64,000 nucleotides of DNA, taken from the IMG/VR virus record IMGVR_UViG_3300027996_002186, positions 310,001 to 374,000 of that record; one strand, 5' to 3'. Positions within the stretch are counted from its first letter, which is position 1; each line of letters opens with the position of its first letter. The translations under genes and the position numbers were made by a program. This document shows positions 7,475 through 49,432 of this stretch, in pieces. The notes beneath the pieces are model-generated. The model saw only the letters and a program-made list of their open reading frames with translations, was not told the origin of the DNA and searched no databases.

Positions 7475-7506
7475 AAAGGGAGAAGGTTAACTTTCTCCCT
7501 TTTTTT
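7475..7506 (+). terminator. Intrinsic terminator after clpC
   Basis: AAAGGGAGAAGG / CTTTCTCCCTTT plus T-run. Confidence 0.75.
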
Positions 7507-7532
7507 GTATATAAAAAATAAATAAAAAATCA

Positions 7533-8114: not shown

Positions 8115-8184
8115 TAAATTATGGAGAATAATAAAAACTATTATTTAAAATGAAAGTAGCGACAATAAAATAAAATTTAAGATA

Positions 8185-8862: not shown

Positions 8863-8877
8863 AAATAAAAATAAATT

Positions 8878-10046: not shown

Positions 10047-10050
10047 ATAT

Positions 10051-10689: not shown

Positions 10690-10691
10690 TT

Positions 10692-11204: not shown

Positions 11205-11218
11205 AAAAAAATAATTAT

Positions 11219-12699: not shown

Positions 12700-12700
12700 T

Positions 12701-13372: not shown

Positions 13373-13379
13373 ATAAGAT

Positions 13380-14330: not shown

Positions 14331-14345
14331 AAATAATAAAATTAA

Positions 14346-16432: not shown

Positions 16433-16433
16433 T

Positions 16434-20523: not shown

Positions 20524-20544
20524 AAAATATTACGATAACTTATT

Positions 20545-22493: not shown

Positions 22494-22502
22494 TAAAAAA
22501 GA

Positions 22503-23348: not shown

Positions 23349-24198
23349 AGTATTAGTAACCGGTGGTTTAGGATTTGTAGGATCTAATTTGGTTGATAAG
23401 TTAGTTGAACAAGGTAATGAAGTAGATGTTATAGATAATTTATCATCTATATCATCATCAAAAGAATATTGTAATCCATTAGCTAATTATTACTATGAAG
23501 ATATTAACAATATAGATATTCTGAATAAACAATATGATAAGATATTTCACTTAGCGGCAGAAGCTAGAATACAACCTTCTTTCGAAGAACCAGTTAAATG
23601 GTTTGAATCAAATGCTTTAGGTACAATTAAAGTTATGGAGTTCGCTAGAAAAAATAATTGTGGGATAGTTGTTTACTCAACCACATCATCAAAAAATCAT
23701 GGTTCTGATTATATAAGTCCTTATACATATTCAAAAGTAGTTGGAGAAGGAGTACTCAAAACTTATTCAGAGTGTTATGATATAAATTGTGCGATGGCTA
23801 CTTTTTATAATGTTTATGGTTATAGGGAACCAGAAATGGGTGAATGGGCTACAGTTGTTGCTAAATTTTTAAGACAATATAAAGATAGCGAATTAATAAC
23901 GGTTGTTGGTGATGGTCAACAGAGTAGGGATTTTACACACGTTGATGATATATGTGATGGGTTGATATCAATTAGTGATGGTGAGTGGAAGGCTGATAAC
24001 TTTGATTTGGGTCGTGGAGAACCAATTAAAATACTTGATTTAGCTATGATGGTTTATGAGGGAGAGGAAGATAATATAAATCATATTCCTTTAAGAAAAA
24101 ATGAAGGACAACATACAGAATCTAATTGGAAAGAAACTTATGAAAAATTAGGATGGAGAGCTAAAAATAATTTAGCAAATTATATAAAAGAAAAATAA
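23341..24198 (+). CDS. NAD-dependent epimerase/dehydratase
   Basis: TGGLGFVG (likely start 23341), HLAA, YxxxK, NVYG, RDFTHV. Confidence 0.85.
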   Translation: MSKVLVTGGLGFVGSNLVDKLVEQGNEVDVIDNLSSISSSKEYCNPLANYYYEDINNIDILNKQYDKIFHLAAEARIQPSFEEPVKWFESNALGTIKVMEFARKNNCGIVVYSTTSSKNHGSDYISPYTYSKVVGEGVLKTYSECYDINCAMATFYNVYGYREPEMGEWATVVAKFLRQYKDSELITVVGDGQQSRDFTHVDDICDGLISISDGEWKADNFDLGRGEPIKILDLAMMVYEGEEDNINHIPLRKNEGQHTESNWKETYEKLGWRAKNNLANYIKEK

Positions 24199-24200
24199 TT

Positions 24201-24770
24201 ATGGCACACAAAGAACAAGATGATTACATCAATAGAATAAAGAATAAATTTCCGAATTTTTTCAAAAATAAAAAAGTATTAGGTATAGGAACATTTAATG
24301 TTTGTGGTACAGAAAATGAATACTTCAATGATTGTGATTACCAGGGGTTAGACCTTGGTCCGGGAGAGGGAGTTGATATAATTTGCCCGGCACAAGATTA
24401 TGACGCACCAGATGGAACATTTGATGTTATTATTTCTTGTGAATGTTGGGAACATAATCCTTATTACAAGGAAAGCATACAAAATGCAACTAGAATGTTA
24501 AAAAGTGGTGGGTTTTTTATATTCACTTGTGCTACTACCGGAAGACCAGTACATGGTGTTAAATATTTAGAAGAAGAATGTAAACTACAATATGATGATT
24601 GGAAAACAATGCCAAATGTGTCTAGGGATAATTGGGATAATGATTATTATAAAAATTTAACCGAAGGTGATATAAGAGAATGTGTTAATATAGATGATAC
24701 ATTTTCTTCTTATGAATTTGAAGTGGAAGAAAATCACTGTGATTTATTCTTCTGGGGTATAAAAAAATAA
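24201..24770 (+). CDS. Class I SAM methyltransferase (type 11-like)
   Basis: GLDLGPG.GVD, FDVIISCECWEH, MLKSGG. Confidence 0.7.
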   Translation: MAHKEQDDYINRIKNKFPNFFKNKKVLGIGTFNVCGTENEYFNDCDYQGLDLGPGEGVDIICPAQDYDAPDGTFDVIISCECWEHNPYYKESIQNATRMLKSGGFFIFTCATTGRPVHGVKYLEEECKLQYDDWKTMPNVSRDNWDNDYYKNLTEGDIRECVNIDDTFSSYEFEVEENHCDLFFWGIKK

Positions 24771-24777
24771 TAAGAAG

Positions 24778-25572
24778 ATGATAGTTAAAGAAGATGATAT
24801 AGTATTTGTTACTAATTCACTTTATACAAAGTGGATGGATTACCAATCAAAAATAATTAAAAGGCTTTTTCCAAATAGCGATCATATAATTGTTGATGGA
24901 TCAACACCAGAATTCAAGGCAAATTGGCCAAATTCTTGGTTTTATCATTTAGATGAAATAAAAAAATCAGATAAAAAATACTATATTCATATTGATGAAG
25001 ATTTCTTTTTAACTTCTAAAGAAGAGTTATTAAAAGCTGTCCAAAAAATGGAAGATGAAAATATAGACTTATTGGGGTGTCCGGATGGATATCAACACTT
25101 CAGAGGAGCAAATCCAGTTGCTATAAACACATTTTTTATGATTGGTAGAGTAGAAGATGTTAAGAGGTTGGATGTTGATTTAAAGTCAGCTAAATATTCT
25201 ATTGTTGTTTCTGAGGGCAATATCTATCATTGGTCTAATAACTTTGGGATAAAATTCGAAGAAATATTTAAAGATGATTTCAATTATAGGTGGGAAGATC
25301 AAGGTGGATCCAATTTCAAATATGACCATGAACCGTATTATACTTTCCTTTGGTCAATGAAAGAAATGGGTTGTAAGTTTGATTATTTATATCCATTTTT
25401 TGATGATAGATTTAAATCAACCAATCCTAGATTAGAAAAAGATTCAGATGATATTGGTATACATATGTGGTATACAAGAAATTGTGATAGTAATATGGAT
25501 GTCTGGGGATTACCAAATGTAGAGAGGTATAATTTGGTTGAAAAATATATTAATGAATTATATGAAATCTAA
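24778..25572 (+). CDS. Hypothetical GT-like protein ending the glycan island
   Basis: YIHIDEDFF (DxD-like); context. Confidence 0.45.
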   Translation: MIVKEDDIVFVTNSLYTKWMDYQSKIIKRLFPNSDHIIVDGSTPEFKANWPNSWFYHLDEIKKSDKKYYIHIDEDFFLTSKEELLKAVQKMEDENIDLLGCPDGYQHFRGANPVAINTFFMIGRVEDVKRLDVDLKSAKYSIVVSEGNIYHWSNNFGIKFEEIFKDDFNYRWEDQGGSNFKYDHEPYYTFLWSMKEMGCKFDYLYPFFDDRFKSTNPRLEKDSDDIGIHMWYTRNCDSNMDVWGLPNVERYNLVEKYINELYEI

Positions 25573-25759
25573 AATTAATAGTACTGAGATACAAGATATA
25601 GGTTCTGCTTATGGTATGGATGTAGAAGATGAATTAACTTCGATGTTATCGGAAGAGATAGCTAAATCAATTGATAGAGAAATATTTAAAAGTATGGGTA
25701 TAGAACTAGATAGATTTAAACGAAGAAAAACATCAATTAATAAGATATTTTCCTCTTAA
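25562..25759 (+). CDS. Mini-protein consisting of a major-capsid (gp23-like) helix fragment plus C-terminal tag
   Basis: QDIGSAYGMDVEDELTSMLSEEIAKSIDREI matches T4 gp23 QDLRAVHGMDADAELSGILATEIMLEINREV (recalled); ends RKTSINKIF. Confidence 0.65.
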   Translation: MKSKINSTEIQDIGSAYGMDVEDELTSMLSEEIAKSIDREIFKSMGIELDRFKRRKTSINKIFSS

Positions 25760-25798: not shown

Positions 25799-26410
25799 AT
25801 GAACAACAACAAAAACATATCACCATTCACAGACTTCGTTTCTTTAGTCAAAAGAGCTAGAATCTTTGCTACTGAAGCTCATAAAGGAGTTTACCGTAAA
25901 GGTAAAGATGAGAATGGAGAAAAGTTAGAGTATATCACTCATCCTATTGCTGTTGGGAAAATTATACACACTCATAAGAAATCTCATAGGATTGCTGTCT
26001 TAGTAGCAGTAGCCATGTTGCATGATACGGTAGAAGACTGTGAGTGGGTTACTATCGAAGTTATCCGACAAGAGTTTGGTGACTTAATCGCTTCTTTAGT
26101 TGAAGAATTAACTTCTGACCCTAAAGGTCTTGAGCAATTTGGTAAAGAGCAATACTTAATTAACAAAATGACTTTTATGTCAACTTGGGGATTATGTATC
26201 AAATTAGCTGACAGAATTCATAACTTATCTGATGTTCAATCTAAGATTGATAGTGGTAAGAACTCTGATATCAAATGGGCTATCAAATACTCTACACAAA
26301 CTAAAAACATCGTAGCGGCTTTAGAGTCTAAAAGAACGTTAACAAATACTCACAAGGTTTTAGTTGAAGTTATTAAAGAGAAAATCGCACCGGCTTTAGA
26401 ACTAGTCTAA
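25799..26410 (+). CDS. HD-domain (p)ppGpp hydrolase, small alarmone hydrolase (SpoT/Mesh1-like)
   Basis: AH..RK, YITHP, LHDTVED, IKLADRIHNL. Confidence 0.8.
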   Translation: MNNNKNISPFTDFVSLVKRARIFATEAHKGVYRKGKDENGEKLEYITHPIAVGKIIHTHKKSHRIAVLVAVAMLHDTVEDCEWVTIEVIRQEFGDLIASLVEELTSDPKGLEQFGKEQYLINKMTFMSTWGLCIKLADRIHNLSDVQSKIDSGKNSDIKWAIKYSTQTKNIVAALESKRTLTNTHKVLVEVIKEKIAPALELV

Positions 26411-26415
26411 TCAAC

Positions 26416-27015
26416 TTAAATCTTTTGTACAATAGTTGGTAATGTACCAAGTTCAAGAAGTTTACTTTTATTAAGTAAGAACTCAATATCATAAAAGTTA
26501 TAGTTAAAGGTCATTGTAAACTCTTTAGCACTAACTTTTTGTTGTGAGTAATTGAAATCATTATCTGATAAAGACTTTAATACAATCTCATAGAATTTTA
26601 TAACATAAATAGCATCTCTGTGTATATCAAGAGCTGTTATAGTAAATGGGTTTAACCAAGAATTCTCAGTATCTAAATAATGCTTGCTAATAATATCAAA
26701 CATTAACCAATAATTCAAATCAGAATCAACTGATCTAAAAGTTACTTGTAATTCACTTGTAGTTATTATATCTTGTATATTTTTAGCAGGTTTGAAACTT
26801 CTTTCCTTACCTCTCATAGTAATTTGTTTTGGCATATCAAAAGATATACCAGGAAAGTTAACACTCTTCATAGTAGAATTAATATAATCAATAACATTAT
26901 CATACTGTATCCAATTCTTTTCTAGAATTGGTTGGTAAGTTTCAATTATCTCAGCAGGCAAAACATCACCTGGTAGATTGAATATAAACTGACTGGACTG
27001 ACTACTTAATCTCAT
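26416..27015 (-). CDS. Tail-tube-fold structural protein (T4 gp3/gp19/gp54-like)
   Basis: SVNFPGI..ELQVTF..D..LNYW..FTMTFNY pattern; late-promoter operon. Confidence 0.45.
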   Translation of the reverse strand: MRLSSQSSQFIFNLPGDVLPAEIIETYQPILEKNWIQYDNVIDYINSTMKSVNFPGISFDMPKQITMRGKERSFKPAKNIQDIITTSELQVTFRSVDSDLNYWLMFDIISKHYLDTENSWLNPFTITALDIHRDAIYVIKFYEIVLKSLSDNDFNYSQQKVSAKEFTMTFNYNFYDIEFLLNKSKLLELGTLPTIVQKI

Positions 27016-28950
27016 TTAATTTGTTTCATCTGTTTTATTTTCACCAGTTGGTTCCTGAGACACACCTGTTGGAATTGGAGCCGGAGGGACAGGAACTCCT
27101 TGTTTTTTAGTAACGGTCGCTGTTTCTTGTGCTAAACTTGTATCTGGTATAATAGAAGGGTTTGAATTTTGTTTATCCGATGCATCATTAAGATCATTAA
27201 CATTACCCTTATCATCATAAATCTTAAATAATCCGGTGTAAATAACAGATGTTGTTGATTTATTCGAGCCGATTATATAAAACACATTAATTCCTGATGT
27301 GTATATTCTTTTTATCTCAGCAAATTTATTTTGAGTAATTTTGAATGATACTTGACCAATATCTAGGTTAATATCACCACTCTCTACAAATAAAGGAAAT
27401 GCTATTTGATTTTTATCATTTCTAATAGTTAATTTAATTTCATTAAATCCAGTTAAATTAAAATATTCTGGCTGTTCATTTGTACCAGTAGCTATTGAAA
27501 ATTTAACAATATTATCATATGGATAAAGTAATATTTGAATTTTACCTAACCCAAAGAAATTCGTACTATCAAAAGTTGCATTTTCGGATTTACCAATAAT
27601 ATTAAATCTATCTATAAGAACTGGGAAAGGAATATTAACAGTTTCAACAATTACATTACCATTTCCGTTTCGACCATTTCCGGCTCCACCACCATTCCCA
27701 CTTAATAATCCACCAGCAGTAGCAGGACCTGGTGTTTGTGGTGTGTTTATTTTATTATCAACTGTTATAACACCCATTGAATTAGCAACACCCACTAATG
27801 ATGGGTCAATAGCATTCTTTATGTTATATATTTTTGGTTTATACGCATTCTTTAGATTGATTTTCATCAATTTTAATGAATATTTGGAAACTTCATCTTG
27901 TAACATACCATAACTAGCTCTTCTTATTATATAAGATTCATCAACAGCATCAATCAACCTCATCTCAACATCAATGATAGCTGTTGTTGTTGAATATTTA
28001 ATTATAGGTCTATACTCTATTGTCTCATTAAAAGAATCTGTTATAGTAACTGTTATAGTTTTACCTCTTATATTTTGCTCATACATCGTGATATTATATT
28101 GTACATAATATCTATGACCTTGTGAAACGGAGTCGTCTAGAAACTTCTTAAACCCACCTAGTGTGTCATTATAAGTTCCATATATCTCAAAGAAATCACC
28201 ATTTTCAGAATTTTCGATAACTAATCCCATTTTTTCAAATTCAGGAGATTGAGTTATAGTAGTAGTTATTTTAGGATCAGTTAAATAGGTAGTGACTCCA
28301 TTTATAGTTTGTATATTATTAACAAAGTGAAAATCAATGAATATCGGACTGGTTAAACTTAAACCAGAACCATTTGTCAAATTAGCATTTATACTATTTA
28401 CTTTTGGTCTATTATCTTCCAATTGAGTAGAAATTTCACTAAGAGCTGGTATCTCAATTTTAATATTCTTACCCCATAACTTCTCTTGAAAAAGAAGTGG
28501 TGGTGATGTAAAATTCATTAGATATTGCTGACTAACATCAGTCATATCAAAATAAAAGTTAGATAAATCGTAAGTTTTTTGATTTAATGAATCATAAGAA
28601 TAAACTTTTATGTAAAATCCTAAATATTCACCGAATGTCCAGTTTATTGGTAAATGAAATTTAAGAATATCATGTCTTATGGGAGGCCCAGCAGAATAAT
28701 TTTTTGTTTGTAAAAAATTATAATAGTCAGGGTTGACCTTGCCATATCTACCAGATACAGCATCAATTCTAAATAGTTGGTTTCCTTGTGTATTTCCTGT
28801 ACCACTTGTTTCAGTGGCCATGTATGATTGTATCTTCTCCTTTGAGTTTATAAGTATATCATATGCTTCACCTATTAAGTTACCATCATTATATACATAC
28901 TCTAAAAGAATATTTTTATCAAGCTTTACGAACTTCGATATCTTAGACAT
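27016..28950 (-). CDS. Large beta-rich putative virion structural protein
   Basis: 644-aa ORF with G/P-rich linkers; TATATATA at 28973-28980; no recognised motif. Confidence 0.5.
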   Translation of the reverse strand: MSKISKFVKLDKNILLEYVYNDGNLIGEAYDILINSKEKIQSYMATETSGTGNTQGNQLFRIDAVSGRYGKVNPDYYNFLQTKNYSAGPPIRHDILKFHLPINWTFGEYLGFYIKVYSYDSLNQKTYDLSNFYFDMTDVSQQYLMNFTSPPLLFQEKLWGKNIKIEIPALSEISTQLEDNRPKVNSINANLTNGSGLSLTSPIFIDFHFVNNIQTINGVTTYLTDPKITTTITQSPEFEKMGLVIENSENGDFFEIYGTYNDTLGGFKKFLDDSVSQGHRYYVQYNITMYEQNIRGKTITVTITDSFNETIEYRPIIKYSTTTAIIDVEMRLIDAVDESYIIRRASYGMLQDEVSKYSLKLMKINLKNAYKPKIYNIKNAIDPSLVGVANSMGVITVDNKINTPQTPGPATAGGLLSGNGGGAGNGRNGNGNVIVETVNIPFPVLIDRFNIIGKSENATFDSTNFFGLGKIQILLYPYDNIVKFSIATGTNEQPEYFNLTGFNEIKLTIRNDKNQIAFPLFVESGDINLDIGQVSFKITQNKFAEIKRIYTSGINVFYIIGSNKSTTSVIYTGLFKIYDDKGNVNDLNDASDKQNSNPSIIPDTSLAQETATVTKKQGVPVPPAPIPTGVSQEPTGENKTDETN

Positions 28951-30537: not shown

Positions 30538-31491
30538 TTATAAATCAGCAAAGAAGTCATCTTCTGATTCTGTTGTAGAACTAACCTCAGATACCTTAGT
30601 TGCTTCATCCATAGAGAAATCATCAGATGATGCTTCACTAGTCTTGTTAAAAGACCCAGAAGACTTACCAGTTAAGAAATTAGAAATTTCTGTAATCTTA
30701 GCTTGTTGCTCATCTGTTAAAGGTTTAGGAGCGAAATCTTCAAGATTGTGATCTCTATCCATTAAAAACTCTTTAATTTTCCCTTGAACTTTAGCATCAA
30801 TCTTACCACCTTCGTTAAGAGGAGCATTTTTGAATTCACCCTTCTCTTTGAAGTAAATAGGTAATGATGTGTTTTCTGGTTTGAACATACTCATCTTGTA
30901 ATCAGGATAAGTTTCGTCACCAGTTTGGATTTCTTTTACTACAAGAACGAAATCTTTTCCAGCTGATAAATCAAATACATTACATTGTACTCCAGAGATT
31001 TCTCCGTTTCTCTCAGCCGAGATTTTATCTTTGATAGTTTTACCATACTGCCAAATCATTATCTTACCAACTAATTCTGGTTGTTGTTCATCTTCAAGAA
31101 CAAGAACATAAGAGTAATACTTCTTAGAATAGTTTAACATTCTTGATTTCTCCATTAAGATTGCGTTCTTTGAATTTTGCATCGTGTAATACAAATCTGT
31201 TAAAGGACACTTTTCTCCAAAATTCTTTGGTGAGTCAAACCAACCACCCAATTCTCTTGGATTTTGGATTTTCACATAGTGAGCGATTTTTTCAATCGCT
31301 GATTGACCTACTTTACCATCTTCTGTTAAGTTAGGAAGAAATCTTACTACGGATCTCCATCCTTTCTTTTTATCTTTCGCCTTTGAAAGATCAACACGGT
31401 AAATTCCGTCATTGTTTGTCTTTTTTACTTCATTCAAGAAGTCCATTTTGCTGTCTAACCCTCCGTTAAACAAATCATCTAAATCTGCCAT
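30538..31491 (-). CDS. T4 gp32-like single-stranded DNA-binding protein
   Basis: VRFLP, CPL, YYSYVLV..D...P...GKI..W.YGK.I.DKI, FDL..GKDF, acidic tail DDFFADL. Confidence 0.85.
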   Translation of the reverse strand: MADLDDLFNGGLDSKMDFLNEVKKTNNDGIYRVDLSKAKDKKKGWRSVVRFLPNLTEDGKVGQSAIEKIAHYVKIQNPRELGGWFDSPKNFGEKCPLTDLYYTMQNSKNAILMEKSRMLNYSKKYYSYVLVLEDEQQPELVGKIMIWQYGKTIKDKISAERNGEISGVQCNVFDLSAGKDFVLVVKEIQTGDETYPDYKMSMFKPENTSLPIYFKEKGEFKNAPLNEGGKIDAKVQGKIKEFLMDRDHNLEDFAPKPLTDEQQAKITEISNFLTGKSSGSFNKTSEASSDDFSMDEATKVSEVSSTTESEDDFFADL

Positions 31492-31605: not shown

Positions 31606-32763
31606 TTATGAAAATTTGCTAATTAGTACTGAATTCAAGGCTGAGTCTCGTTGTGTTCTTACTCCCTCGGCCAATATCGATTTTGATAACATCTCATATT
31701 CTATATCACTAACCTTACAAAGTTTTAATTCTGCGTGATATAATGTAATAATATCCCCGTTATCTTCATCCACGTAGTCTTCCATCCTCAAACCACCAAT
31801 TGGTCTAAACTCAGTAGTTTCATATATTCGTTCTAAACATTCATATAATGTTTCGAGACCTGTTTTTTCAAGTGTTATATTTATAAATTTAATTGGATAA
31901 GCTTTTATATTACCATTTAATATATTCTCATAAAATAAATCCCAAAAATTAGATGTTTTATCTTCTATGGAGTCATATTTACGAGAGAAAGTGGTTTGAT
32001 TTGTGGTGGGTTTCAAATCACTTAAAAAAAGGTATTCTACGCTACTATTTCTGAGTTTAAGTTTATTAGATTCCTCTACTGTCATAATATATTCTTTCCA
32101 ATATTCATCAGCCAATCCAGGTATTGGTTTATTTAACCAATCATCTTCAAAAGACATATCATATAACATCTGTGATCTTCTTTCTCTTGTTAAATCTGCT
32201 GATGGGAAGAAAGCATACCCACCTTGATCTACACCAAAGTTGTGGTGGTATAATTCATCAGTTATATCATAGAAAATTTCTTCAATATCGACATCCAATG
32301 GGAATTCATCTTTAGTTACAACCTTTGATTCATTTATACTCTCAGATACTTTATTTAACTTGAAATAAAGTTTTATGAAATTAGTCTCGTCTAAATTCAT
32401 CAAGTGTTTAGGTAATAAATCAATCCCCATTCCAAAATCCTTATATGTTTGTCTAATGTTATGTTTATCATCATAATTAAATGCTATAAGAGTATAATTT
32501 TTAGGATTCATATATTCTATTAATCTCATAAAAGCATCTTCATATTTCTTTACCTTAAATACTTTATTGATTTGATCCAAAAAAGTAAGCACAGGGTCAA
32601 ATTCTTCACCAATAGTTATTATAACATTACCATCTACTCTAGCATCAACCGAAACTGGTATACTATCATCTGATAATTCGGATAATATATCATTAACATC
32701 AGATATGGTATCATAATCCATATAGATTGATTCAAATAATTTATATTTCTTTAAGTATTTCAA
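31606..32763 (-). CDS. Putative virion internal protein, two repeated modules
   Basis: MKYLKKYKLFES leader; DIL.EL.DD module; internal ESINES linker. Confidence 0.6.
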   Translation of the reverse strand: MKYLKKYKLFESIYMDYDTISDVNDILSELSDDSIPVSVDARVDGNVIITIGEEFDPVLTFLDQINKVFKVKKYEDAFMRLIEYMNPKNYTLIAFNYDDKHNIRQTYKDFGMGIDLLPKHLMNLDETNFIKLYFKLNKVSESINESKVVTKDEFPLDVDIEEIFYDITDELYHHNFGVDQGGYAFFPSADLTRERRSQMLYDMSFEDDWLNKPIPGLADEYWKEYIMTVEESNKLKLRNSSVEYLFLSDLKPTTNQTTFSRKYDSIEDKTSNFWDLFYENILNGNIKAYPIKFINITLEKTGLETLYECLERIYETTEFRPIGGLRMEDYVDEDNGDIITLYHAELKLCKVSDIEYEMLSKSILAEGVRTQRDSALNSVLISKFS

Positions 32764-34046
32764 AATTTTAATAATATTTTTAATGTATAATCTTCTATAT
32801 CCCTATCATCATCGAATTGTCTATCTCCTCTACTCTTCCCGAAAATAACCTCACCGTGGTCCATTGTTGGTAATATTGTTGGTAAAACTTCATCTAACCC
32901 AGATTCTAATTTCCTTAAATTCATCGGTACTGATTTATACGGGTACATACCAACAATACCCTGATCAGTATTACCTATATCAATATAAACACAAGGAACA
33001 TACATAGTTAATATGTTTGCTGGGCTATAATTACGCAATTTTTGTAAATCATATTTATTTTTAACTATGATATCACTATTTCTAACAACCTCATAGTTCA
33101 TAATATCAAAGTTAACACATTGGAATTTTTTATCAGTTACATATTCCTCAGCTTCATCTTGTCTGATATAAACATCATTTTTATACCCACCTATTTTAAA
33201 TGTCGGTAACATAATTGATCTAATTATATCTCTCATTATCATATAAAACCTACTATCATCTTCTGTATCATAAACAGGCATTGTTCCATTATATTTATTC
33301 TTAATTGGTTCATCTTTTTTATAATAATCACCATAAGTTATAGCAGTTGTGACCCATTTACCCTTTTCAGTTGGTATTTCATCCCATATATCATATAGTC
33401 TATCATTAACATAATCTATATCAACTTTCTTCATAGAATTCCAAGTTTTAGTCAAATAATCTTCGATTATACCATACCATTTATCACCAATAAAATGGTT
33501 TGTCCATTTTTTAATATCAGACTCACTTAATTTATTATTCTTCATATTCTGATAATATAAATCATTATAAAAATCAAAAATGCTATATCTTTCTTCGTTG
33601 GATTCATTTAAACTCTCATCCATTGAATTTAATAAATCACCATAATCATCCTCTGAATAAATAAGTAATGATATACCTGGATAACTAAACTCTTCACCAC
33701 CATAAACATCGATGAATCTATCTAATGACATCCAATCTTGTTCCTTTGTAACTTCTACATCAACACCATATCCTTCATCAGCTCTCCAAACATAATCTTC
33801 TATTCTTTTAACAGCATCCTTTATATCATCCCATCTCCAAATCTCATCATTCTTTCTATAAATACCAACACATACCGATCTTATTGAGTCTGAAAACATA
33901 GGTGGTGTGTAATTAGTCTCATCTATAACTACACCAAATCCATCATCAGATAATTCTAATACAATATCCTCTAATTCTCTTTTTAGATTGGAGAATCTAG
34001 TAGAGTCTTCTGATTCAAATAGTTTATATTTCTTTAAGTATTTCAC
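32760..34046 (-). CDS. Putative virion internal protein
   Basis: MKYLKKYKLFES leader; DIVLELSDDG module; internal ESLNES linker. Confidence 0.6.
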   Translation of the reverse strand: MKYLKKYKLFESEDSTRFSNLKRELEDIVLELSDDGFGVVIDETNYTPPMFSDSIRSVCVGIYRKNDEIWRWDDIKDAVKRIEDYVWRADEGYGVDVEVTKEQDWMSLDRFIDVYGGEEFSYPGISLLIYSEDDYGDLLNSMDESLNESNEERYSIFDFYNDLYYQNMKNNKLSESDIKKWTNHFIGDKWYGIIEDYLTKTWNSMKKVDIDYVNDRLYDIWDEIPTEKGKWVTTAITYGDYYKKDEPIKNKYNGTMPVYDTEDDSRFYMIMRDIIRSIMLPTFKIGGYKNDVYIRQDEAEEYVTDKKFQCVNFDIMNYEVVRNSDIIVKNKYDLQKLRNYSPANILTMYVPCVYIDIGNTDQGIVGMYPYKSVPMNLRKLESGLDEVLPTILPTMDHGEVIFGKSRGDRQFDDDRDIEDYTLKILLKF

Positions 34047-35353
34047 TTTCTAATTACTTTAATTCTTTCTGTTTGATACTTCATTATATCAACATCTTGA
34101 TGCTCTGTTAATAAATCAACAATACCTTGATACATTTGTATTGTTATTTTACAATCTGTAATAGCATCGTGATAACCACTCATATTAATACCAAGTACTG
34201 GTCCTATTTTAGACATAGATGATGATATTAATCCATTATCTCTTGGTGAAGTACCAATAAAATCTATTTTCTCTTGAAAAGATGGGTCAGTCTCAGCTAA
34301 CTTCTGTAACAATGGTAAAAAGTATAATTGTATCAACATCTTAGTATCAAATACTTCATTCACAATCTTATTACCATATCTACCACTCAACATAGCCATA
34401 TCAAATGCCGCGTTTTGTGCAATTAATAAACAAGGTTCGTATTCACCTATGAATTTAAAGAAATCATTAACAACAGTTTCTTCGTCTTTGTACTTATATC
34501 CGCCACTACCATAATGGTTGAATCCTAAAACCCATTTAGTTCTATCTTCTGGTTCGTTATATTTAGACTTAGTATCATTTGTTAGTTTTATTTTCTCATC
34601 AAATTGTCCTAACTCCTTGAATTCGTTATTATCAAAATCACATTCAGTTACTAAACAAGATACTTGTGTTAATTGTTCTTTCTTTGGACCATTTAATCCT
34701 GTTGTTTCCACATCAACAAAAATCCAAGGCATATCAGTTTTAGAATCTAACCAAGAAAGTATTTCGGGTATTGATTTATACCACATCTTATTTTCATTTA
34801 TTGATTCTGAAACGTTATTAACTTCAAATTTGAATTCCTTACCATCAGCATGTGAATAAGTAACTTTATCAATGTTCTTAACATTATATTTATAATCGGG
34901 TTTTAGATATTTCTTACCCATACCTTTTTTAACATAAGCAATTGTTATATGTGGTTTATATTCTGGGTATTCATTTGAATTTGGTAATTCGGATAATTCA
35001 TCAAAAAGATTTTGTAATGATCCCTGTGGGTTAATATTGAATTTAACAACATCAAATTTATCATTCTCAAATATATCAACACCATCAACTTCTATATTTA
35101 TATCACCTTCAAAGGTATCGAATATAGACTTAACTTCCTCATTTGATACTTCCTTATGTAAACCATATAAAAGTGTAAGGTGTGGTCTCTTTTGTACACC
35201 ATACGTTGAATCACCGTCACTTTCATAGATGTCTTCTGGGTCTATCCAAGATGTTATTTCTTCCCAATTATTAACTGGTACGTCAACCATAACACAACCA
35301 TATTCATAGCCGTTTATTGATTCTTTAATAAATTCTTTATATTTCTTTAACAT
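34043..35353 (-). CDS. 2H phosphoesterase + DEDDh 3'-5' exonuclease fusion
   Basis: PHLTLLY and PHITIAY (two HxT motifs); FVDVETTG, AQNAAFD, HDAITD; MLKKYKEFIKES leader; ESINE linker between the domains. Confidence 0.8.
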   Translation of the reverse strand: MLKKYKEFIKESINGYEYGCVMVDVPVNNWEEITSWIDPEDIYESDGDSTYGVQKRPHLTLLYGLHKEVSNEEVKSIFDTFEGDINIEVDGVDIFENDKFDVVKFNINPQGSLQNLFDELSELPNSNEYPEYKPHITIAYVKKGMGKKYLKPDYKYNVKNIDKVTYSHADGKEFKFEVNNVSESINENKMWYKSIPEILSWLDSKTDMPWIFVDVETTGLNGPKKEQLTQVSCLVTECDFDNNEFKELGQFDEKIKLTNDTKSKYNEPEDRTKWVLGFNHYGSGGYKYKDEETVVNDFFKFIGEYEPCLLIAQNAAFDMAMLSGRYGNKIVNEVFDTKMLIQLYFLPLLQKLAETDPSFQEKIDFIGTSPRDNGLISSSMSKIGPVLGINMSGYHDAITDCKITIQMYQGIVDLLTEHQDVDIMKYQTERIKVIRK

Positions 35354-35432
35354 ATCATGTATATATTTTATTTCTATGATGGAAAAACAGAAAATATTCC
35401 TTATATTCGTAATAACTTAAAGATATAAAATT

Positions 35433-35923: not shown

Positions 35924-36193
35924 TTAGTTTAAGTTGTAGTTAAATATTGGTGTTTCATCTTCATAATCATCATCCTCAGCGTCTGTATCGAAATCAAATC
36001 CCATACTTACTAAGTAACTCATAACTTCATCAGTTAATTTCATGTTAGCATTTCTTTCTTCCATATAGTTGTCAAACATACCAACAGTAAATTGACCCCT
36101 TTCTTCTCTAAGTTTTATTAACTTAGGTAATAGGTCTTTAGCAATGTCTTCTGCTAAGTTTGAATGTGATTCAAATGTTTTTAAATGCTTCAT
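35924..36193 (-). CDS. Small protein with capsid-targeting-like leader
   Basis: MKHLKTFES. Confidence 0.6.
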   Translation of the reverse strand: MKHLKTFESHSNLAEDIAKDLLPKLIKLREERGQFTVGMFDNYMEERNANMKLTDEVMSYLVSMGFDFDTDAEDDDYEDETPIFNYNLN

Positions 36194-36620
36194 TGTCTAA
36201 CTCTGTTTTAATTTTCTCAAATGGTTTGTGGTATTGAGAGTCAATTACTTCAAAGAAGTTTTTCCAACCATCTCCCCTATAATTAAACAACAAGGTACTT
36301 TCTTTGTCTTTACTATTAAATATGTATCTTAACCTTGAACCTACTTTTTTCCGGGTGTAGAAATTAAGCAATGGAATTTCAGCCATTAATTGGTTTGAAC
36401 CCATACCCTTAATGAACTCAACTTCAATCGGTCCAGTAATATATTCTTCTTCTCTAGGTGGTGAATCTGGATGAAAAATCGTTGCTCCGTATCTTCGGTT
36501 TAGGTCATCGATATTAATTTTATAATCGAAATTAAGATTCTTCGTCAATATATTTGTTTCTACCTTTTCACCACCATAAGATGATTCGTTAAATTTTTCA
36601 AATTTATTTAAATATTTCAT
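36171..36620 (-). CDS. Protein with capsid-targeting-like leader
   Basis: MKYLNKFEKFNES. Confidence 0.6.
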   Translation of the reverse strand: MKYLNKFEKFNESSYGGEKVETNILTKNLNFDYKINIDDLNRRYGATIFHPDSPPREEEYITGPIEVEFIKGMGSNQLMAEIPLLNFYTRKKVGSRLRYIFNSKDKESTLLFNYRGDGWKNFFEVIDSQYHKPFEKIKTELDNEAFKNI

Positions 36621-36907
36621 TGTTTAATCTTTGTAACTTTTTTACCACCGAATGGTCCACTTAAATGTTTTAAGTTCCAAGATGGTATGAATTTCTTATT
36701 AGCTTTTTCATAATCTTCATAAGATTCAATGCCTGTATCAATAGGATTATGAATATATTGTATATTAGCACCTTCTTTATTCATATCAGAGATTCTATCA
36801 CCGATATCAGTACCTTTAGTTAACTTTCTTAACCTTTTAAGTTGGTCAACAGTGTGTTGCCTTGGTAGTGATTCGTTTATCTCACTAAATCTTTTTAAGT
36901 ATTTCAT
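36617..36907 (-). CDS. Protein with capsid-targeting-like leader
   Basis: MKYLKRFSEINES. Confidence 0.6.
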   Translation of the reverse strand: MKYLKRFSEINESLPRQHTVDQLKRLRKLTKGTDIGDRISDMNKEGANIQYIHNPIDTGIESYEDYEKANKKFIPSWNLKHLSGPFGGKKVTKIKQ

Positions 36908-37353
36908 AATTTGTTTATTTCATCTATTTTTACTTGTAGTGTATCTATTTTTGATTTTAGACCACTTGTTATATCTTCTTTAGATATTTTAGTGACAATC
37001 CAATCACCATAATAATCACCACCATCATAAACTCTATCATCTTTTGGATCCATAATTATTTTGAAAAACTCTCCTTCAAAAAACAAAAAATTTCCTAAAT
37101 CTGATTTATACATTTTTTGAATTCTGTAACCATCATCATTAATTATAAAGACCTTACCTTCTTCTTTAGCTCTTTTCATACAATATTCAGCTAAACTTTC
37201 TAAGTTAATTCCTGGTGTTCTTGGATTTGACCAAACCTTTTTAGATATTTCTTTATATTCATCTTCTCTTGAAGGAACATTACCATATTCAGATGCTTCA
37301 CCATTATCAATATAATCTTTAACATTTTCGTTAAATTTCTTTAAATGTTTCAT
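36904..37353 (-). CDS. Protein with capsid-targeting-like leader
   Basis: MKHLKKFNEN; AATATATA at 37374-37381. Confidence 0.6.
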   Translation of the reverse strand: MKHLKKFNENVKDYIDNGEASEYGNVPSREDEYKEISKKVWSNPRTPGINLESLAEYCMKRAKEEGKVFIINDDGYRIQKMYKSDLGNFLFFEGEFFKIIMDPKDDRVYDGGDYYGDWIVTKISKEDITSGLKSKIDTLQVKIDEINKL

Positions 37354-42712: not shown

Positions 42713-42898
42713 TTATCCATTAAATACTTTATTAATTTTATTTTTCCTATTACTTTGTTTAATATCGGTCCAAATATCTGAACGAAAAGTTAATGATTTC
42801 CACTCACCACTTTGAAAAATATAGTTATTTGATTCAATCGTGTTATAATAAATATCTCCTTCTATTGGATTCTCTGGTACTGTTGATAATACCAACAT
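42713..42898 (-). CDS. Mini-protein with fibre-like repeat and C-terminal tag
   Basis: PENPIEGDIYYNT..YIFQSGEW; ends RKNKINKVF. Confidence 0.5.
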   Translation of the reverse strand: MLVLSTVPENPIEGDIYYNTIESNNYIFQSGEWKSLTFRSDIWTDIKQSNRKNKINKVFNG

Positions 42899-43989
42899 TA
42901 AGCTTCAAAATTCTTAGATCTCTTTAGTTTTTCAAGTATATACTTTTCATCCATTGAAATCTTCGTTGGTATTCTAATATTAACAACTACGAATAAATCA
43001 CCCAATCCTAAATTAACATCAGGTATACCTTTTCCAGAAACTCTTATAGTTCTTCCGTGAGGTGTTCCTTCATCGATAGTAATTGGTAATTCACCGTGTG
43101 GTGTTTTAACTTTAAGATGTGCTCCTAAGATAGCATCTATAACGGATACTTCTTTCTCAACAATTAAATTATTACTATCTCTTTTGAAATAGAATTCTCT
43201 GAGTTCATCTATCATAATATGTAAATCCCCAGGAACACCATCTCTTACATGATTACCATAACTTCTCATATTAAGTTGCATACCGGCAGAAACACCAGCC
43301 GGGATATCTACCTCAACAACTTCATCTTTAACACTTGTACCACTTCCGTGACAAACACCACATTTATTACTGATTTGTTTACCACCGCCTTGACAATCTG
43401 GACAAGTTGCTTGTTGTCTAACTTGTCCGAATGGTGTCTGTTGTAAAACCACTCTACTTCCTCTACCACCACAAGGAATACAATCTTTAACACCAGATCC
43501 TCCTTTACCAGAACAACTATTACAAGAATCCTGTCTCTTATATTTTATCTTCTTAGTAGTACCATTTAAGACATCCTCAATCGACAATGTAACTTTTATT
43601 CTTAAATCAGATCCTCTATTTTTCCTTCTTTGTTTTGGTCCGCCGAATTGTCCGCCGCTTCCGAAAATATCACCAAATTGACTAAAAATATCTTCCATAT
43701 TAAATCCATGACCATATTGACCACCGTCACCTCCTCCACCATTGGAGAATGGATTACCTTGTCCAAATGGACTACCACCTGGTCCATATCTATCATAACT
43801 TTCTCTCTTTTCTTTAGATGAGAGTGTATCATATGCTTCTGCTGCTTCTTTGAATTTAGATTCAGACTCAGCATTTCCTGGGTTTTTATCTGGGTGATGT
43901 TTCATCGCCATTTTGCGATAAGCTCTCTTAATCTGATCCTCAGATGCCGTCTTATCTACTCCTAGTGTGTTGTAATAATCTTTTGCCAT
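42898..43989 (-). CDS. dnaJ: DnaJ co-chaperone
   Basis: J-domain HPD, G/F-rich region, four CxxCxGxG zinc repeats. Confidence 0.95.
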
Positions 43990-48128: not shown

Positions 48129-49394
48129 ATGAAGAAATTGTCAAAATATTTAGAATTTATAAATGAAAGCTCAGATTACAAGGGTTATTCAATTCCTTCT
48201 TATAAGGAAGCTGTTGAGTTATGCTCAAAAAATGCTGCTTTTTATGAATCTAAAATGATTGTTGATGGATTTAATGTATCTGTATTCAATTACAGACTAA
48301 CAAGTTATAAGGATTTTGCTAACCCTCTTGATCACAAACCAGAATTAAAAGGTTATGAAATGAGGGGGTTAACATTCATTTTTAATGAAGATGGTACATT
48401 ATTCAATAGATATGTGTTGCTTGAAAAATTCTTTAATATAAATCAAGTTCCGGAATCAATGTATTCCATTGTTAAGGATTATAAAATAAAATATGTTAAT
48501 AATAAAGAAGATGGTTCAATAGCGACATTCGTGAAATTACCAAATGGTAAAATTGTTGGTAAATCTAAAATGGGGTTTGATAATGACCAATCAAATGGTA
48601 TTAATAGAATATATCAAAATGATACTGAAATAAAGACATTAGTTAACTGGTGTTTAGATAATGATATAATACCTATATTTGAATATGTCGCTCCTCATAA
48701 TAGAATTGTATTGAGATATACACAAGAGGAATTGATACTTTTAAGATTAAGAGATAATAAAACCGGTAAACATATCGATATACAAGACCACTTAGATAAG
48801 ATTGGTTCGACTAAGATTGCTCCATTCGAAGATGATCACCAAGGTAACTTGGATAAGTTAATTGAATTGGTTGCTAATCAAGTTGATAAAGAGGGATGTG
48901 TTGTACAAGCTGAGGATAGTGAAGGTAGAGATTTCTTCTTCAAATTAAAGACTCCTTGGTATTGTGAGCGTCATGGTTTATTAACTAATGATATTTACAG
49001 AGAACACATTATAATAGGATATATCTTAGATGATAAGATTGATGATATTCTTAGTCAAATACCAGAGGATGAAGTTGAAGCACATACAAGAATAAATAAG
49101 ATTATTGTAATAGTTAAGAGAGCTATAGATGATAAGATGGAAGATATCAAGAAGTCATATCAGGTATTTCTTGATATGGGGGAAGACAGAAAAGAGTATG
49201 CTCTTACACATATGAAGGCAGAACCTAACTTCTGTTATGTTATGAATTTAGCAAACGGTAAAGATCTTTATGATATAGCTAAAGAGCACGTAAGAGATAA
49301 GACTAAGAGGTTGATGATATCAAGAGATTGGTTACAGAAAATAGACCCAACACTTTTCTTCCAAGACCCGGAAGAAGATGAAGAGAATAATTAA
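48129..49394 (+). CDS. rnl1: T4 Rnl1-family RNA ligase
   Basis: LEKFFN, KEDGS (motif I), EY..P.NRIV, EGCV, FKLKTPWY; leader MKKLSKYLEFINES. Confidence 0.85.
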   Translation: MKKLSKYLEFINESSDYKGYSIPSYKEAVELCSKNAAFYESKMIVDGFNVSVFNYRLTSYKDFANPLDHKPELKGYEMRGLTFIFNEDGTLFNRYVLLEKFFNINQVPESMYSIVKDYKIKYVNNKEDGSIATFVKLPNGKIVGKSKMGFDNDQSNGINRIYQNDTEIKTLVNWCLDNDIIPIFEYVAPHNRIVLRYTQEELILLRLRDNKTGKHIDIQDHLDKIGSTKIAPFEDDHQGNLDKLIELVANQVDKEGCVVQAEDSEGRDFFFKLKTPWYCERHGLLTNDIYREHIIIGYILDDKIDDILSQIPEDEVEAHTRINKIIVIVKRAIDDKMEDIKKSYQVFLDMGEDRKEYALTHMKAEPNFCYVMNLANGKDLYDIAKEHVRDKTKRLMISRDWLQKIDPTLFFQDPEEDEENN

Positions 49395-49432
49395 AGAGAG
49401 TTTTTAACTCTCTTTTTTTATATATACTATTA

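Follow-up and report, generated by a model that had tools for sequence, protein, structure and literature searches.

A putatively capsid-tagged fusion of a 2H phosphoesterase and a DEDDh exonuclease in a marine giant phage

A marine giant phage encodes a genuine fusion of a 2H phosphoesterase domain and a DEDDh exonuclease domain, whose N-terminal leader and inter-domain linker look like the capsid-targeting and head-protease cleavage signals of phage T4. The protein may thus be packed into the virion and cut in two, but its chemistry looks more like RNA-end repair than destruction of CBASS signals. The gene lies in a window of 64,000 nucleotides (positions 310,001 to 374,000 of the IMG/VR virus record IMGVR_UViG_3300027996_002186), which belongs to a marine relative of the 634-kb "Mahaphage" LR745206, the closest complete relative (83% protein identity for this gene). 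A sequence-only reading had described a leader, two HxT motifs, a cleavable-looking ESINE linker and a complete DEDDh motif set, and had proposed a virion-delivered enzyme that would destroy defence signals in two steps at the moment of injection, by analogy with the T4 anti-CBASS protein Acb1. Each of the features it described is present in the sequence and conserved across hundreds of metagenomic homologues. Its interpretation is partly supported: the leader and the linker fit, though still by inference, a T4-type targeting and prohead-protease logic, whereas the Acb1-like two-step function received no specific support.

The coordinates match a single open reading frame exactly, and the positions of the leader, the linker and the catalytic motifs were checked by translation (Table 1). 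A Pfam search found 2_5_RNA_ligase2 (PF13563, residues 30-143, E 7.8e-8) and RNase_T (PF00929, residues 211-407, E 3.8e-6, 28 bits for a cut-off of 24), both above their cut-offs. In an alignment of 36 orthologues (52-91% identity), all the catalytic residues of both domains are invariant. In the leader, Y5 (94%), F8 (100%), E11 (100%) and S12 (88%) are conserved, and in the linker region N186 (91%), E187 (100%), N188 (97%), K189 (100%) and M190 (100%), whereas residues 176-182, just before them, are only about 40% conserved. The AlphaFold2 model (pLDDT 83.9) gives two folded domains, the only long segments with a pLDDT below 50 being residues 1-15 and 181-188, i.e., the leader and the linker.

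Table 1. Positions in the window of the fusion gene, its elements and the neighbouring or functionally related genes (↓, cleavage site, proposed for this phage and its relative).
Positions	Strand	Feature	Details
34043..35353	-	Whole ORF: leader, 2H phosphoesterase, linker, DEDDh exonuclease	436 aa
35321..35353	-	Leader MLKKYKEFIKE, T4-CTS-like	Residues 1-11; proposed cleavage after E11
34814..35308	-	2H phosphoesterase domain	Residues 16-180; domain model pLDDT 91
35174..35182	-	First HxT motif	H58-L-T60
34943..34951	-	Second HxT motif	H135-I-T137
34790..34813	-	Disordered linker VSESINEN	Residues 181-188; proposed protease site I-N-E187↓N188
34046..34789	-	DEDDh (DnaQ/RNase T-like) 3'-5' exonuclease domain	Residues 189-436
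34706..34714	-	Exo I motif	D214-V-E216
34400..34402	-	Exo II aspartate	D318
34154..34171	-	Exo III motif	H395-DAIT-D400
35359..35368	-	Promoter-like AAATATATAC	One mismatch from the recurrent TAATATATA[CG] motif; ends 5 nt before the ATG
32760..34046	-	Downstream gene; start overlaps the stop of the fusion gene	428 aa; leader MKYLKKYKLFES, 'DIVLELSDDGF' domain, internal ESLNES at 33600-33617, ORFan C-terminal part
31606..32763	-	Next gene	385 aa; identical leader, same domain family, internal ESINES at 32326-32343
35924..37353	-	Four small leader-tagged ORFs upstream	149, 96, 149 and 89 aa; no known family
48129..49394	+	T4 RnlA-family RNA ligase with a leader-like N-terminal extension (MKKLSKYLEFINES)	PF09511 2.7e-21; TIGR02308 3.3e-38, alignment begins at residue 25; leader HMM only 5.7 bits
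229..714	+	Pnkp-like polynucleotide kinase domain, no leader	PF13671 3.4e-19; TIGR04075 N-terminal kinase region 6.8e-11
30538..31491	-	gp32-type ssDNA-binding protein; conserved synteny anchor downstream of the exonuclease gene	PF08804 1.2e-16; same order in relatives L033/L034

The fusion is not an assembly artefact, since 641 homologues were found in public data and identical DNA across the junction is present in independent marine metagenome runs. The motifs are also more than chance: the hexamer ES[LIV]NE[SN] occurs 3 times in 98,388 residues against 0.1 expected, all three copies lying in this gene and the next two genes, and [LIVF]NE[SN] occurs 15 times within the first 20 residues of ORFs against 1.3 expected. 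The fusion was not found in the literature that we could search.

The leader shares Y, F, I and E with the T4 capsid-targeting sequence (CTS) MKTYQEFIAE (verified from T4 DNA and from PMC8442874), with the same spacing and an offset of one residue, at the four positions shown experimentally to govern targeting (4 and 7) and processing (8 and 10) (PMC9026906). Both the aromatic residues (Y5, F8) and the I-x-E processing site at the end of the leader (I9-K10-E11↓S12) are thus in place, and they are conserved in a segment predicted to be disordered. The leader is specific to N-termini, with 64 of 426 ORFs here scoring at least 8 bits against a leader HMM, compared with 5 of 1602 internal-Met windows, and a similar leader heads 138 of 984 ORFs in LR745206. 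It sits on at least 50 unrelated sequence families, and is absent from the portal, capsid protein, tube, baseplate, neck and UvsW homologues as well as from the Maribacter phage homologue of the 2H domain. The HMM built only from this genome ranks T4 IPI, IPIII and IPII as the top 3 of 29 T4 proteins, and 4th, 14th and 15th of 1,560 T4 Met windows, although it also gives 8-12 bits to a few non-CTS T4 windows. [quoted passage not shown] In contrast with T4, roughly 140 genes per genome are tagged instead of a handful, the tagged proteins are acidic (median pI 4.8) rather than basic, recognisable enzymes (2H, DEDDh, Rnl1, CCA-adding enzyme, cyclase, Nudix) are among them, and a second, internal site would split a two-enzyme precursor.

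The protease logic rests on LR745206, which encodes a T4 gp21-like prohead protease domain with the His (GEFDHPD) and Ser (VSSRAAG) motifs, fused to a scaffold with about 12 YSEYIAE↓N repeats and several xLNE↓S sites. A gp23-like capsid protein (88.7 bits) lies 2 kb downstream and its propeptide reads ...EFHSINE↓NAYANAS, ending in the same pentapeptide (SINE↓N) as the linker; a T4-type portal is also found in the lineage. The protease, the scaffold and the capsid protein were found only in this relative, the 313-kb contig itself, which is evidently partial, lacking them. HSINEN is conserved in a capsid-protein-N-terminus paralogue of this contig. Stand-alone homologues of the exonuclease start with MKILRYEQ(L/I)NE-NKMWYK, so the linker is the retained second, processing half of the exonuclease module's own leader. 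Internal [LIVF]NE[SN] sites are not enriched in the other leader-bearing proteins of LR745206 (6 observed against 4.0 expected), and the internal cut is therefore a special case and not a general architecture.

An alternative is that the protein is an ordinary cytoplasmic enzyme that is never packaged, the leader being a peptide tag for a phage chaperone, protease or compartment, or an N-terminal coding feature favouring translation of short-leader mRNAs in a Shine-Dalgarno-poor Bacteroidota host, and the ESINE linker only a fossil of a gene fusion. In agreement with this view, the tagging of 14-15% of all ORFs is hard to fit in one capsid and would be far beyond anything known for T4 or phiKZ-like heads, the tagged proteins are acidic, the leader uses AT-rich codons, internal sites are not enriched in the other tagged proteins, and T4 does not package its own RNA-repair enzymes. 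Many tagged genes also have the promoter-like motif only 13-15 nt upstream of the ATG, implying very short 5' UTRs; this motif precedes the capsid protein and protease genes of LR745206 but also RNR and DnaJ genes, so it does not indicate timing. The phage encodes Hsp70-like and DnaJ-like proteins, recognised by eye only, that could recognise a tag. However, the leader codons vary synonymously as in the rest of the genome, with five different Ser codons at the E-S position, suggesting that selection acts on the peptide and not on a nucleotide-level signal. Specific residues (Y, F and E-S) are conserved rather than a mere AT-rich composition, they match the mapped T4 CTS, the same I/L-x-E↓N/S motif occurs at the end of the capsid propeptide and in the scaffold repeats, and only the processing half of the leader is retained and conserved in the linker. 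We therefore consider the cytoplasmic hypothesis unlikely, although it is the strongest of the alternatives, whereas targeting, packaging and cleavage, inferred from sequence alone in this uncultured phage, are plausible and somewhat more likely than not.

The 2H domain has the bilobed alpha/beta fold, its model giving VIA Z scores of 10-13.9 to 20 solved 2H enzymes, with the next unrelated fold at Z 4. Profile and fold searches place it nearer ThpR/LigT, YjcG and Usb1 (Z 13.9) than Acb1. TIGR02258 (ThpR/LigT RNA 2',3'-cyclic phosphodiesterases; PDB 4qak/5ldm, 1vgj, 2d4g; Z 12-13) is the best NCBIfam hit, but far below the equivalog cut-off (27.4 against 65.7 bits), so the domain resembles this family without membership being shown. 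Pyrococcus LigT is the best PDB profile hit (2e-5, against 0.018 for Acb1), and the top Swiss-Prot fold hits are RNA 2',3'-cyclic phosphodiesterases, without any Acb1 in the top 30. In BFVD, Acb1 entries rank 31st or lower with a TM of about 0.5, against 0.75-0.8 for LigT-like phage proteins.

The hypothesis of a packaged Acb1-like anti-CBASS or anti-cOA device, in which the 2H domain would open cyclic oligonucleotide signals and an Orn/REXO2-like DEDDh domain would finish the linear products, is consistent with some of our data. The Pfam Acb1 model (PF23474) hits at 25.9 bits, just below its cut-off of 27, and reaches 29.3-29.6 bits in three orthologues (P0030, P0080 and P0046). Acb1 (T4 gene 57B; PDB 7t26/7t27) gives the highest sequence identity (20%) among solved 2H structures, with Z 11.6. 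Viral 2H signal-degrading phosphodiesterases recur, Acb1, penguinpox cGAMP PDE, MHV ns2 and rotavirus VP3 all matching at Z 10-12. The exonuclease matches REXO2 bound to pGG (Z 14.3) and the CBASS-associated Cap18 (Z 14.2), leader-tagged nucleotide cyclase and Nudix enzymes suggest a nucleotide-signal theme, and this role was proposed by Iyer et al. for head-delivered 2H domains (PMC5512222). Nevertheless, Acb1 is never the best match, PF13563 beats PF23474 in every sequence, and hhalign against T4 Acb1 covers only 31 columns around the second HxT motif. Moreover, 2H enzymes leave 2',3'-cyclic or 3'/2'-monophosphate ends, which DEDDh exonucleases, needing a 3'-OH, do not readily take, so that a direct hand-over between the two domains is chemically awkward; if the linker is cut, the two domains need not cooperate at all. 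Acb1 is also a stand-alone protein of about 150 aa, without a leader or an exonuclease. We consider this hypothesis unlikely, and our results caution against reading every phage 2H enzyme as Acb1.

The genome context favours RNA-end healing, since an Rnl1 ligase, a Pnkp-like kinase and a leader-tagged CCA-adding enzyme are encoded. A 2H phosphodiesterase, a ligase and a polynucleotide kinase are the three activities of the fungal/plant tRNA ligase Trl1 pathway, which includes a 2H CPD module, and jumbo-phage 2H enzymes have been read as specialists for 2',3'-cyclic phosphates and RNA repair. However, no Tpt1 that could remove a 2'-phosphate was found. Taken together, we tentatively propose that the gene encodes a precursor of two active nucleases, a ThpR/LigT-like 2H 2',3'-cyclic phosphodiesterase and a DnaQ/RNase T-like 3'-5' exonuclease, which arose by in-frame fusion of two modules that each had its own leader. 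In this view, the leader would dock the precursor to the scaffolding core of the prohead, and the gp21-type protease would cut after E11 (F-I-K-E↓S) and after E187 (S-I-N-E↓N), removing the leader and separating the two enzymes, which would stay in the head and enter the cell with the DNA. Once inside, the 2H enzyme would open the 2',3'-cyclic phosphates left by host tRNA/RNA-cleaving defence nucleases and the exonuclease would trim 3' ends, together with the ligase, the kinase and the CCA-adding enzyme. Our analyses establish the domain identities, the intact catalytic residues, the conserved disordered leader and linker, the leader family, and the T4-like protease, scaffold and capsid protein of the closest complete relative, whereas packaging, cleavage, injection, catalytic activity and substrate are inferred; given active enzymes, an RNA-end substrate is about as likely as not.

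A broader possibility, which we hold to be less likely than not, is that in the largest known phages (the Mahaphage clade, Bacteroidota hosts) about one gene in seven carries a T4-type capsid-targeting leader, the capsid being loaded with more than 100 different protease-matured proteins that enter the cell with the DNA. These would include a ready-made RNA-repair and nucleotide-signal toolkit (2H phosphodiesterase, DEDDh exonuclease, Rnl1 ligase, CCA-adding enzyme, Nudix hydrolases and a nucleotide cyclase), and fusions keeping only the cleavage half of a leader would allow two cargo enzymes to ride in on one targeting signal and be separated inside the head. If the leader really is a capsid-targeting signal, giant phages would use part of their extra coding capacity to deliver pre-made enzymes rather than waiting for early gene expression, extending the T4 internal-protein idea from a few small inhibitors to whole enzymatic pathways. 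It would also give a simple rule for predicting virion-delivered effectors in uncultured T4-like megaphages (a leader of the form MK[YH]LKxFxxFxES or MxxKKYxxFIKES, followed by I/L-x-E↓S/N), and natural two-cargo precursors that could be used in T4 protein-delivery engineering.

Head delivery of 2H domains has been predicted before, in the polyvalent phage proteins where they are fused to MuF or portal modules, with proteolytic release of domains proposed (Iyer et al. 2017, PMC5512222), and our fold search also found 2H domains inside 880-1100-aa actinophage 'capsid morphogenesis/structural' proteins. Here, only the 2H and exonuclease domains were found, without MuF, portal or own peptidase domain, and delivery would use a T4-type leader and the head maturation protease. 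In the giant phages SPN3US and phiKZ, many ejection and inner-body proteins are cut after Glu by the prohead protease, at A/S-x-E, and N-terminal propeptides of about 125 residues have shared N-termini among paralogues (PMC5694885), which is comparable to the leader plus 'DILLELxDxGY' domain that replaces the 2H module in relatives. Those phages belong to a different lineage with a different cleavage motif, and their proteins were identified by virion mass spectrometry, whereas ours are inferred from sequence.

The exonuclease domain has the RNase H-like fold and matches DinG-exo, Pol III epsilon, RNase T, ExoI, REXO2 and Cap18 at VIA Z 14-16 (Foldseek RNase T E 4e-7), with no single closest subfamily, and its fold does not tell RNA from DNA substrates. 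A DNA-directed role in replication, recombination or degradation of host DNA, like T4 DexA or a DnaQ-type proofreader, with the 2H domain as an accessory acquired by fusion, could explain why the exonuclease gene lies upstream of gp32 in every relative examined, whatever its N-terminal module. The PHROG hits ('DNA polymerase exonuclease subunit' and 'DNA polymerase') and the VIA matches to the DinG exonuclease on ssDNA, Pol III epsilon, ExoI, TREX1 and T4 DexA (Z 11.2) are in agreement with this role. We consider it very unlikely, because leader-tagged ORFans and not replication genes lie between the exonuclease gene and gp32, a stand-alone homologue lies in an unrelated context, the recurrent partner in hundreds of sequences is an RNA/nucleotide-directed 2H domain, and RNase T and REXO2 match equally well. 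The domain is about 250 aa long with insertions, and its invariant NENKMWYK N-terminal segment is unique to this family.

The coordinates proposed in the sequence-only reading correspond exactly to one ORF of 436 aa, and the features which that reading described, a leader, two HxT motifs, an ESINE linker and a complete DEDDh set, are all present. A Pfam search gives a 2H phosphoesterase match (PF13563, residues 30-143, E 7.8e-8) and a DEDD-type exonuclease match (PF00929, residues 211-407, E 3.8e-6), both above their cut-offs, whereas the Acb1 model (PF23474) scores 25.9 bits, below its cut-off of 27. Translation of the individual motifs confirms the leader MLKKYKEFIKE, HLT and HIT, the linker VSESINEN, DVE, D318 and HDAITD, and every catalytic residue is invariant in an alignment of 36 orthologues of 52-91% identity. 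In the AlphaFold2 model (pLDDT 83.9) two folded domains are predicted and the only long low-confidence segments, residues 1-15 and 181-188, are the leader and the linker. The fusion is real and common, since 641 homologues were found in public data, most with the same architecture of about 437 aa, and identical DNA across the junction is present in independent seawater metagenomes. The phage is present at usable depth in several seawater data sets. Metatranscriptome runs hold only a few short contigs lying on this stretch, from two libraries for the near-identical fragments, two or three of them being near-identical and the rest 90-95% alike, which is compatible with transcription, although DNA carry-over cannot be excluded and timing cannot be read.

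The window is part of a virus contig of 312,709 bp with about 28% GC, and its nearest GenBank relatives are LR745206 (634,780 bp), LR756502 (642,428 bp) and LR756504 (636,363 bp). The largest curated genomes of Al-Shayeb et al. 2020 belong to the Mahaphage clade, with predicted Bacteroidetes hosts (PMC7162821). LR745206 encodes distant T4-type morphogenesis genes, namely portal gp20 (E 5e-23), gp4, gp25, gp19, gp3 and gp5, together with a gp23-like major capsid protein (PF07068, 88.7 bits) and, 2 kb upstream of it, a gp21-like prohead protease domain (PF03420, 20 bits; BLASTP against T4 gp21, E 3e-4) in which the GE(L/F)(N/D)HP and VSSR motifs are aligned. In the contig itself, PF03420 gave no hit, PF07068 gave only fragments, a phmmer search with T4 gp19-24 against the ORFs found nothing significant, and a PHROGs search of ten large candidate structural ORFs found only a baseplate wedge protein. 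Since capsid protein, portal and prohead protease are lacking, we conclude that the contig is a partial genome, probably only about half of one, despite the CheckV estimate of 91% completeness. Small ORFs (67-163 aa) of the contig each copy a different piece of the T4-type major capsid protein: they match residues 328-368 of the LR745206 protein (E 5e-8), residues 8-43 (E 1e-3), residues 8-112 including HSINEN (E 4e-16), and positions 302-354 of the Gp23 profile. LR745206 keeps similar mini-ORFs beside its full capsid protein gene, and both decoys for capsid-sensing defences and assembly regulators are possible roles. The coordinates of these and other features are collected in the table.

Table. 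Location of the features discussed in the text (window positions unless another sequence is named).
Feature	Sequence	Position	Strand
2H phosphoesterase-DEDDh exonuclease ORF	window	34043-35353	-
Promoter-like motif preceding this ORF	window	35359-35368	-
Downstream neighbour, internal ESLNES	window	32760-34046	-
Next downstream neighbour, internal ESINES	window	31606-32763	-
Examples of leader-headed ORFs	window	1706-2143, 2150-2656, 31606-34046, 35924-37353, 48129-50116
Examples of ORFs with the DILLELxDxGY domain	window	31606-32763, 32760-34046, 49433-50116, 2150-2656
Small capsid-protein-like ORF	window	25538-25759	+
Small capsid-protein-like ORF	window	61172-61561	-
Small capsid-protein-like ORF	contig, outside the window	257468-257959	-
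Small capsid-protein-like ORF	contig, outside the window	293142-293345	+
Leader-tagged class III nucleotide cyclase domain protein	contig, outside the window	80451-81140	-
Leader-tagged CCA-adding/poly(A) polymerase-family enzyme	contig, outside the window	92357-93559	-
gp21-like prohead protease fused to scaffold-like region (ORFs L026 and L027)	LR745206	198546-200726 (L026)
Gene 61.1	T4, NC_000866	18966-19130
Hsp70/DnaK-like ORF	window	50461-52341	+
DnaJ-like ORF	window	42898-43989	-
Sugar-nucleotide and glycosyltransferase-looking genes	window	about 7500-25600	+
HD_4 domain protein	window	25799-26410	+
199-aa ORF, counterpart of a gp3-like ORF of LR745206	window	26416-27015	-
Adjacent 644-aa ORF	window	27016-28950	-

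The same kind of N-terminus heads many ORFs of the contig, in the forms MK[YH]LKxFxxFxES and M(I/L)xKKYxxFIKES. An HMM built from these leaders scores at least 8 bits on 64 of 426 ORF N-termini (about 15%), against 5 of 1602 internal-Met windows, three of which are probably mis-called starts, and in the complete relative LR745206 138 of 984 ORFs carry the leader, spread over the whole genome. Once the leader is removed, the bearers fall into mostly unrelated sequence families (68 proteins, largest cluster 7), and they are mostly ORFans. Synonymous codons vary as in the rest of the genome, with five different Ser codons used at the E-S position, and selection therefore acts on the peptide and not on the DNA. 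Of about 30 larger bearers, only four have a Pfam family: the present 2H-exonuclease, an Rnl1 RNA ligase, whose leader scores only 5.7 bits with the HMM, a CCA-adding/poly(A) polymerase-family enzyme (PF01743, 1.7e-30) and a class III adenylate/guanylate cyclase (PF00211, 5e-19). Two of three NudE-like Nudix proteins of LR745206 also carry the leader, whereas its portal, capsid protein, tube, baseplate, neck and UvsW homologues do not. In the contig, gp32 and the baseplate wedge protein start without it, as do the topoisomerase, RNR, DnaK-like and glycosyltransferase-like ORFs, which were recognised by eye only, and the Maribacter phage homologue of the 2H domain lacks it.

This leader resembles the T4 capsid-targeting sequence (CTS). 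As translated from T4 DNA, T4 IPIII starts MKTYQEFIAE|A, a CTS also quoted in PMC8442874, and T4 IPI starts MKTFKEFTSTTTPVSTITE|A, and mutational work summarised in PMC9026906 places targeting at residues 4 and 7 and processing at residues 8 and 10. Asp at position 10 blocks cutting in T4. The present protein reads M-L-K-K-Y-K-E-F-I-K-E|S and, with a one-residue offset, its Y, F, I and E coincide with T4 residues 4, 7, 8 and 10. In the orthologue alignment, Y5 is 94%, F8 100%, E11 100% and S12 88% conserved, inside a segment predicted to be disordered. As a cross-check, the HMM built only from the N-termini of this phage ranks T4 IPI, IPIII and IPII as the top three of 29 T4 proteins, and 4th, 14th and 15th of 1,560 Met-initiated windows over 166 kb of T4. 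A few unrelated windows also reach 8-12 bits, showing that the model is not perfectly specific. The highest-scoring of all T4 windows (12.3 bits) is the 54-aa protein gp61.1, which starts MKTFKEFIKED, a CTS-like N-terminus.

The sequences of the relative are in agreement with a T4-type protease logic in this lineage. In LR745206 the gp21-like domain is fused to a long scaffold-like region holding about 12 tandem repeats of ...YSEYIAE-N(L)DKNI..., which are near-copies of the T4 CTS core YQEFIAE and are followed by an acidic tract, and also several (V/K)LNE-S and KVNE-S sites. The capsid protein begins MSHIRIDKQKAMKKWSPVLENMGV..., which is homologous to the T4 gp23 N-terminus, and its propeptide region reads ...EYAEFHSINE-NAYANAS, just before the first conserved segment of the mature protein, where T4 gp23 is cut at L-T-E65|A. 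HSINEN is kept exactly in the 163-aa paralogue of the capsid protein N-terminus found in the contig. I-N-E|N fits the T4 rule of I/L-x-E, and the same pentapeptide SINEN is the core of the linker studied here. T4 gp24 has a short N-terminal propeptide (PMC5694885). This propeptide, MAKINELLRE-S, also shows an E-S junction.

Stand-alone homologues of the exonuclease (258-263 aa) begin MKILRYEQ(L/I)NE-NKMWYKTIP..., whereas the fusion reads ...VSESINE-NKMWYKSIP, and one orthologue (P0051) still carries an in-frame fossil, ...YMRILRFNEINENKMWYK. The linker is therefore the second, processing half of the exonuclease module's own leader, the first, targeting half having been lost. N186 to M190 are 91-100% conserved while the seven residues before them are about 40% conserved, and the segment is predicted to be disordered, both points fitting a linear motif under selection. 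At the same locus, upstream of gp32, relatives carry a 380-aa version in which the 2H domain is replaced by a domain of about 110 aa with the signature DILLELxDxGY, again followed by EEINE-NKMWYK. A search seeded from a cluster showed that this domain has at least 17 paralogues in the contig, almost always directly after a leader and either alone or followed by a variable C-terminal part. It has no match in Pfam or PHROGs, and it forms the N-terminal part of the two genes downstream of the fusion, which have their own internal ESLNES and ESINES and for which no family was found in Pfam, PHROGs or the Atlas. The hexamer ES[LIV]NE[SN] occurs three times in the whole predicted proteome against 0.1 expected, and only in these three consecutive genes. 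A general architecture of leader, carrier domain, cleavage site and cargo was considered and rejected as a rule, since internal [LIVF]NE[SN] sites are not enriched in the other leader-bearing proteins of LR745206, and internal sites are therefore products of particular fusions, not a general design.

Concerning the 2H domain, its model (pLDDT 91) matches 20 solved 2H enzymes at Z 10-14, with Usb1 at 13.9, Deinococcus CPDase 13.8, YjcG 13.3, archaeal LigT 13.3, E. coli ThpR 12.2, penguinpox cGAMP PDE 12.0 and Acb1 11.6. A profile of the family against PDB sequences finds Pyrococcus LigT-like proteins at 2e-5 and Acb1 at 0.018, and hhalign against T4 Acb1 aligns only 31 columns around the second HxT motif. 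The best NCBIfam hit is TIGR02258, RNA 2',3'-cyclic phosphodiesterase, well below its cut-off, and the top Swiss-Prot fold hits are ThpR, YjcG and USB1. In BFVD the nearest structures are LigT-like proteins of flavobacterial and other phages (TM 0.75-0.8), Acb1 entries ranking 31st or lower with TM about 0.5, and several 880-1100-aa actinophage 'capsid morphogenesis/structural' proteins contain the same domain. Some orthologues do pass the Acb1 Pfam cut-off (29.3-29.6 bits), though always below PF13563. No paper was found on the BCSR5 phage phosphodiesterase structures 9q2g/9q2y. The exonuclease matches DinG-exo, Pol III epsilon, RNase T, ExoI, TREX1-like, 3'hExo, REXO2 and Cap18 at Z 14-16 and is a generic DEDDh enzyme, whose fold does not decide between RNA, DNA and dinucleotide substrates.

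The genome also encodes a T4 RnlA-family ligase (TIGR02308, 3.3e-38) with a 22-residue leader-like N-terminal extension, a Pnkp-like polynucleotide kinase domain (AAA_33; TIGR04075 kinase region, 6.8e-11) and the leader-tagged CCA-adding-type nucleotidyltransferase. Ligase, kinase and 2H cyclic phosphodiesterase are the three activities of the Trl1-type healing-and-sealing pathway. Iyer et al. read jumbo-phage 2H enzymes as specialists for the 2',3'-cyclic phosphates left by tRNA cleavage, with a possible second role against nucleotide signals (PMC7824862). We therefore rank RNA/tRNA 3'-end healing and trimming first, and signal destruction second. Tpt1 (PF01885) is absent from the contig and from LR745206, which is not decisive because hosts often supply it, and no tRNA genes were found in the window. 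The interpretation of the sequence-only reading, a virion-delivered enzyme destroying defence signals in two steps, is only partly supported, and the two-step scheme has a chemical problem: 2H enzymes leave cyclic or monophosphate ends, while DEDDh exonucleases need a 3'-OH. Moreover, if the linker is cut, the two enzymes need not cooperate.

Whereas the fusion, its intact catalytic residues and the leader family are established by the sequence data, packaging, cleavage and injection are all inferred, as are the activities and substrates of the two domains, and the protease, scaffold and capsid protein evidence comes from a relative and not from this contig. Tagging about 14% of the proteome is unprecedented, and the cargo is acidic (median pI 4.8), unlike T4 internal proteins, so that a tag for some other system remains a serious rival explanation. 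T4 CTS-directed packaging and injected anti-defence proteins are textbook cases, head-delivered 2H domains were predicted in MuF- or portal-fused polyvalent proteins (PMC5512222), and giant-phage ejection proteins with cleaved propeptides are documented (PMC5694885). In contrast, we found no paper linking huge phages with capsid-targeting sequences and none describing this 2H-DEDDh fusion. The leader family that the gene exposes is more surprising than the gene itself.

A promoter-like motif, TAATATATA[CG], lies either 13-15 nt or 28-32 nt upstream of the start codons of many genes, the short distances implying very short 5' UTRs. It precedes the gene studied here as well as the capsid protein and protease genes of LR745206, but its use as a marker of late genes was rejected because it also precedes the RNR, DnaJ, ClpB-like and UvsX-like genes, and it says nothing about timing. 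The window also encodes an Hsp70/DnaK-like protein and a DnaJ-like protein, both recognised by eye from their hallmark N-termini, a long run of sugar-nucleotide and glycosyltransferase-looking genes, and an HD_4 (RelA/SpoT-type hydrolase) domain protein (Pfam 6.9e-13). Finally, the 199-aa ORF is the counterpart of an LR745206 ORF that resembles T4 gp3, the tail sheath terminator (phmmer 5.9e-4), and the adjacent 644-aa ORF, which has no family hit, may therefore be a tail sheath or tube-associated protein; tail genes thus lie directly downstream of gp32.
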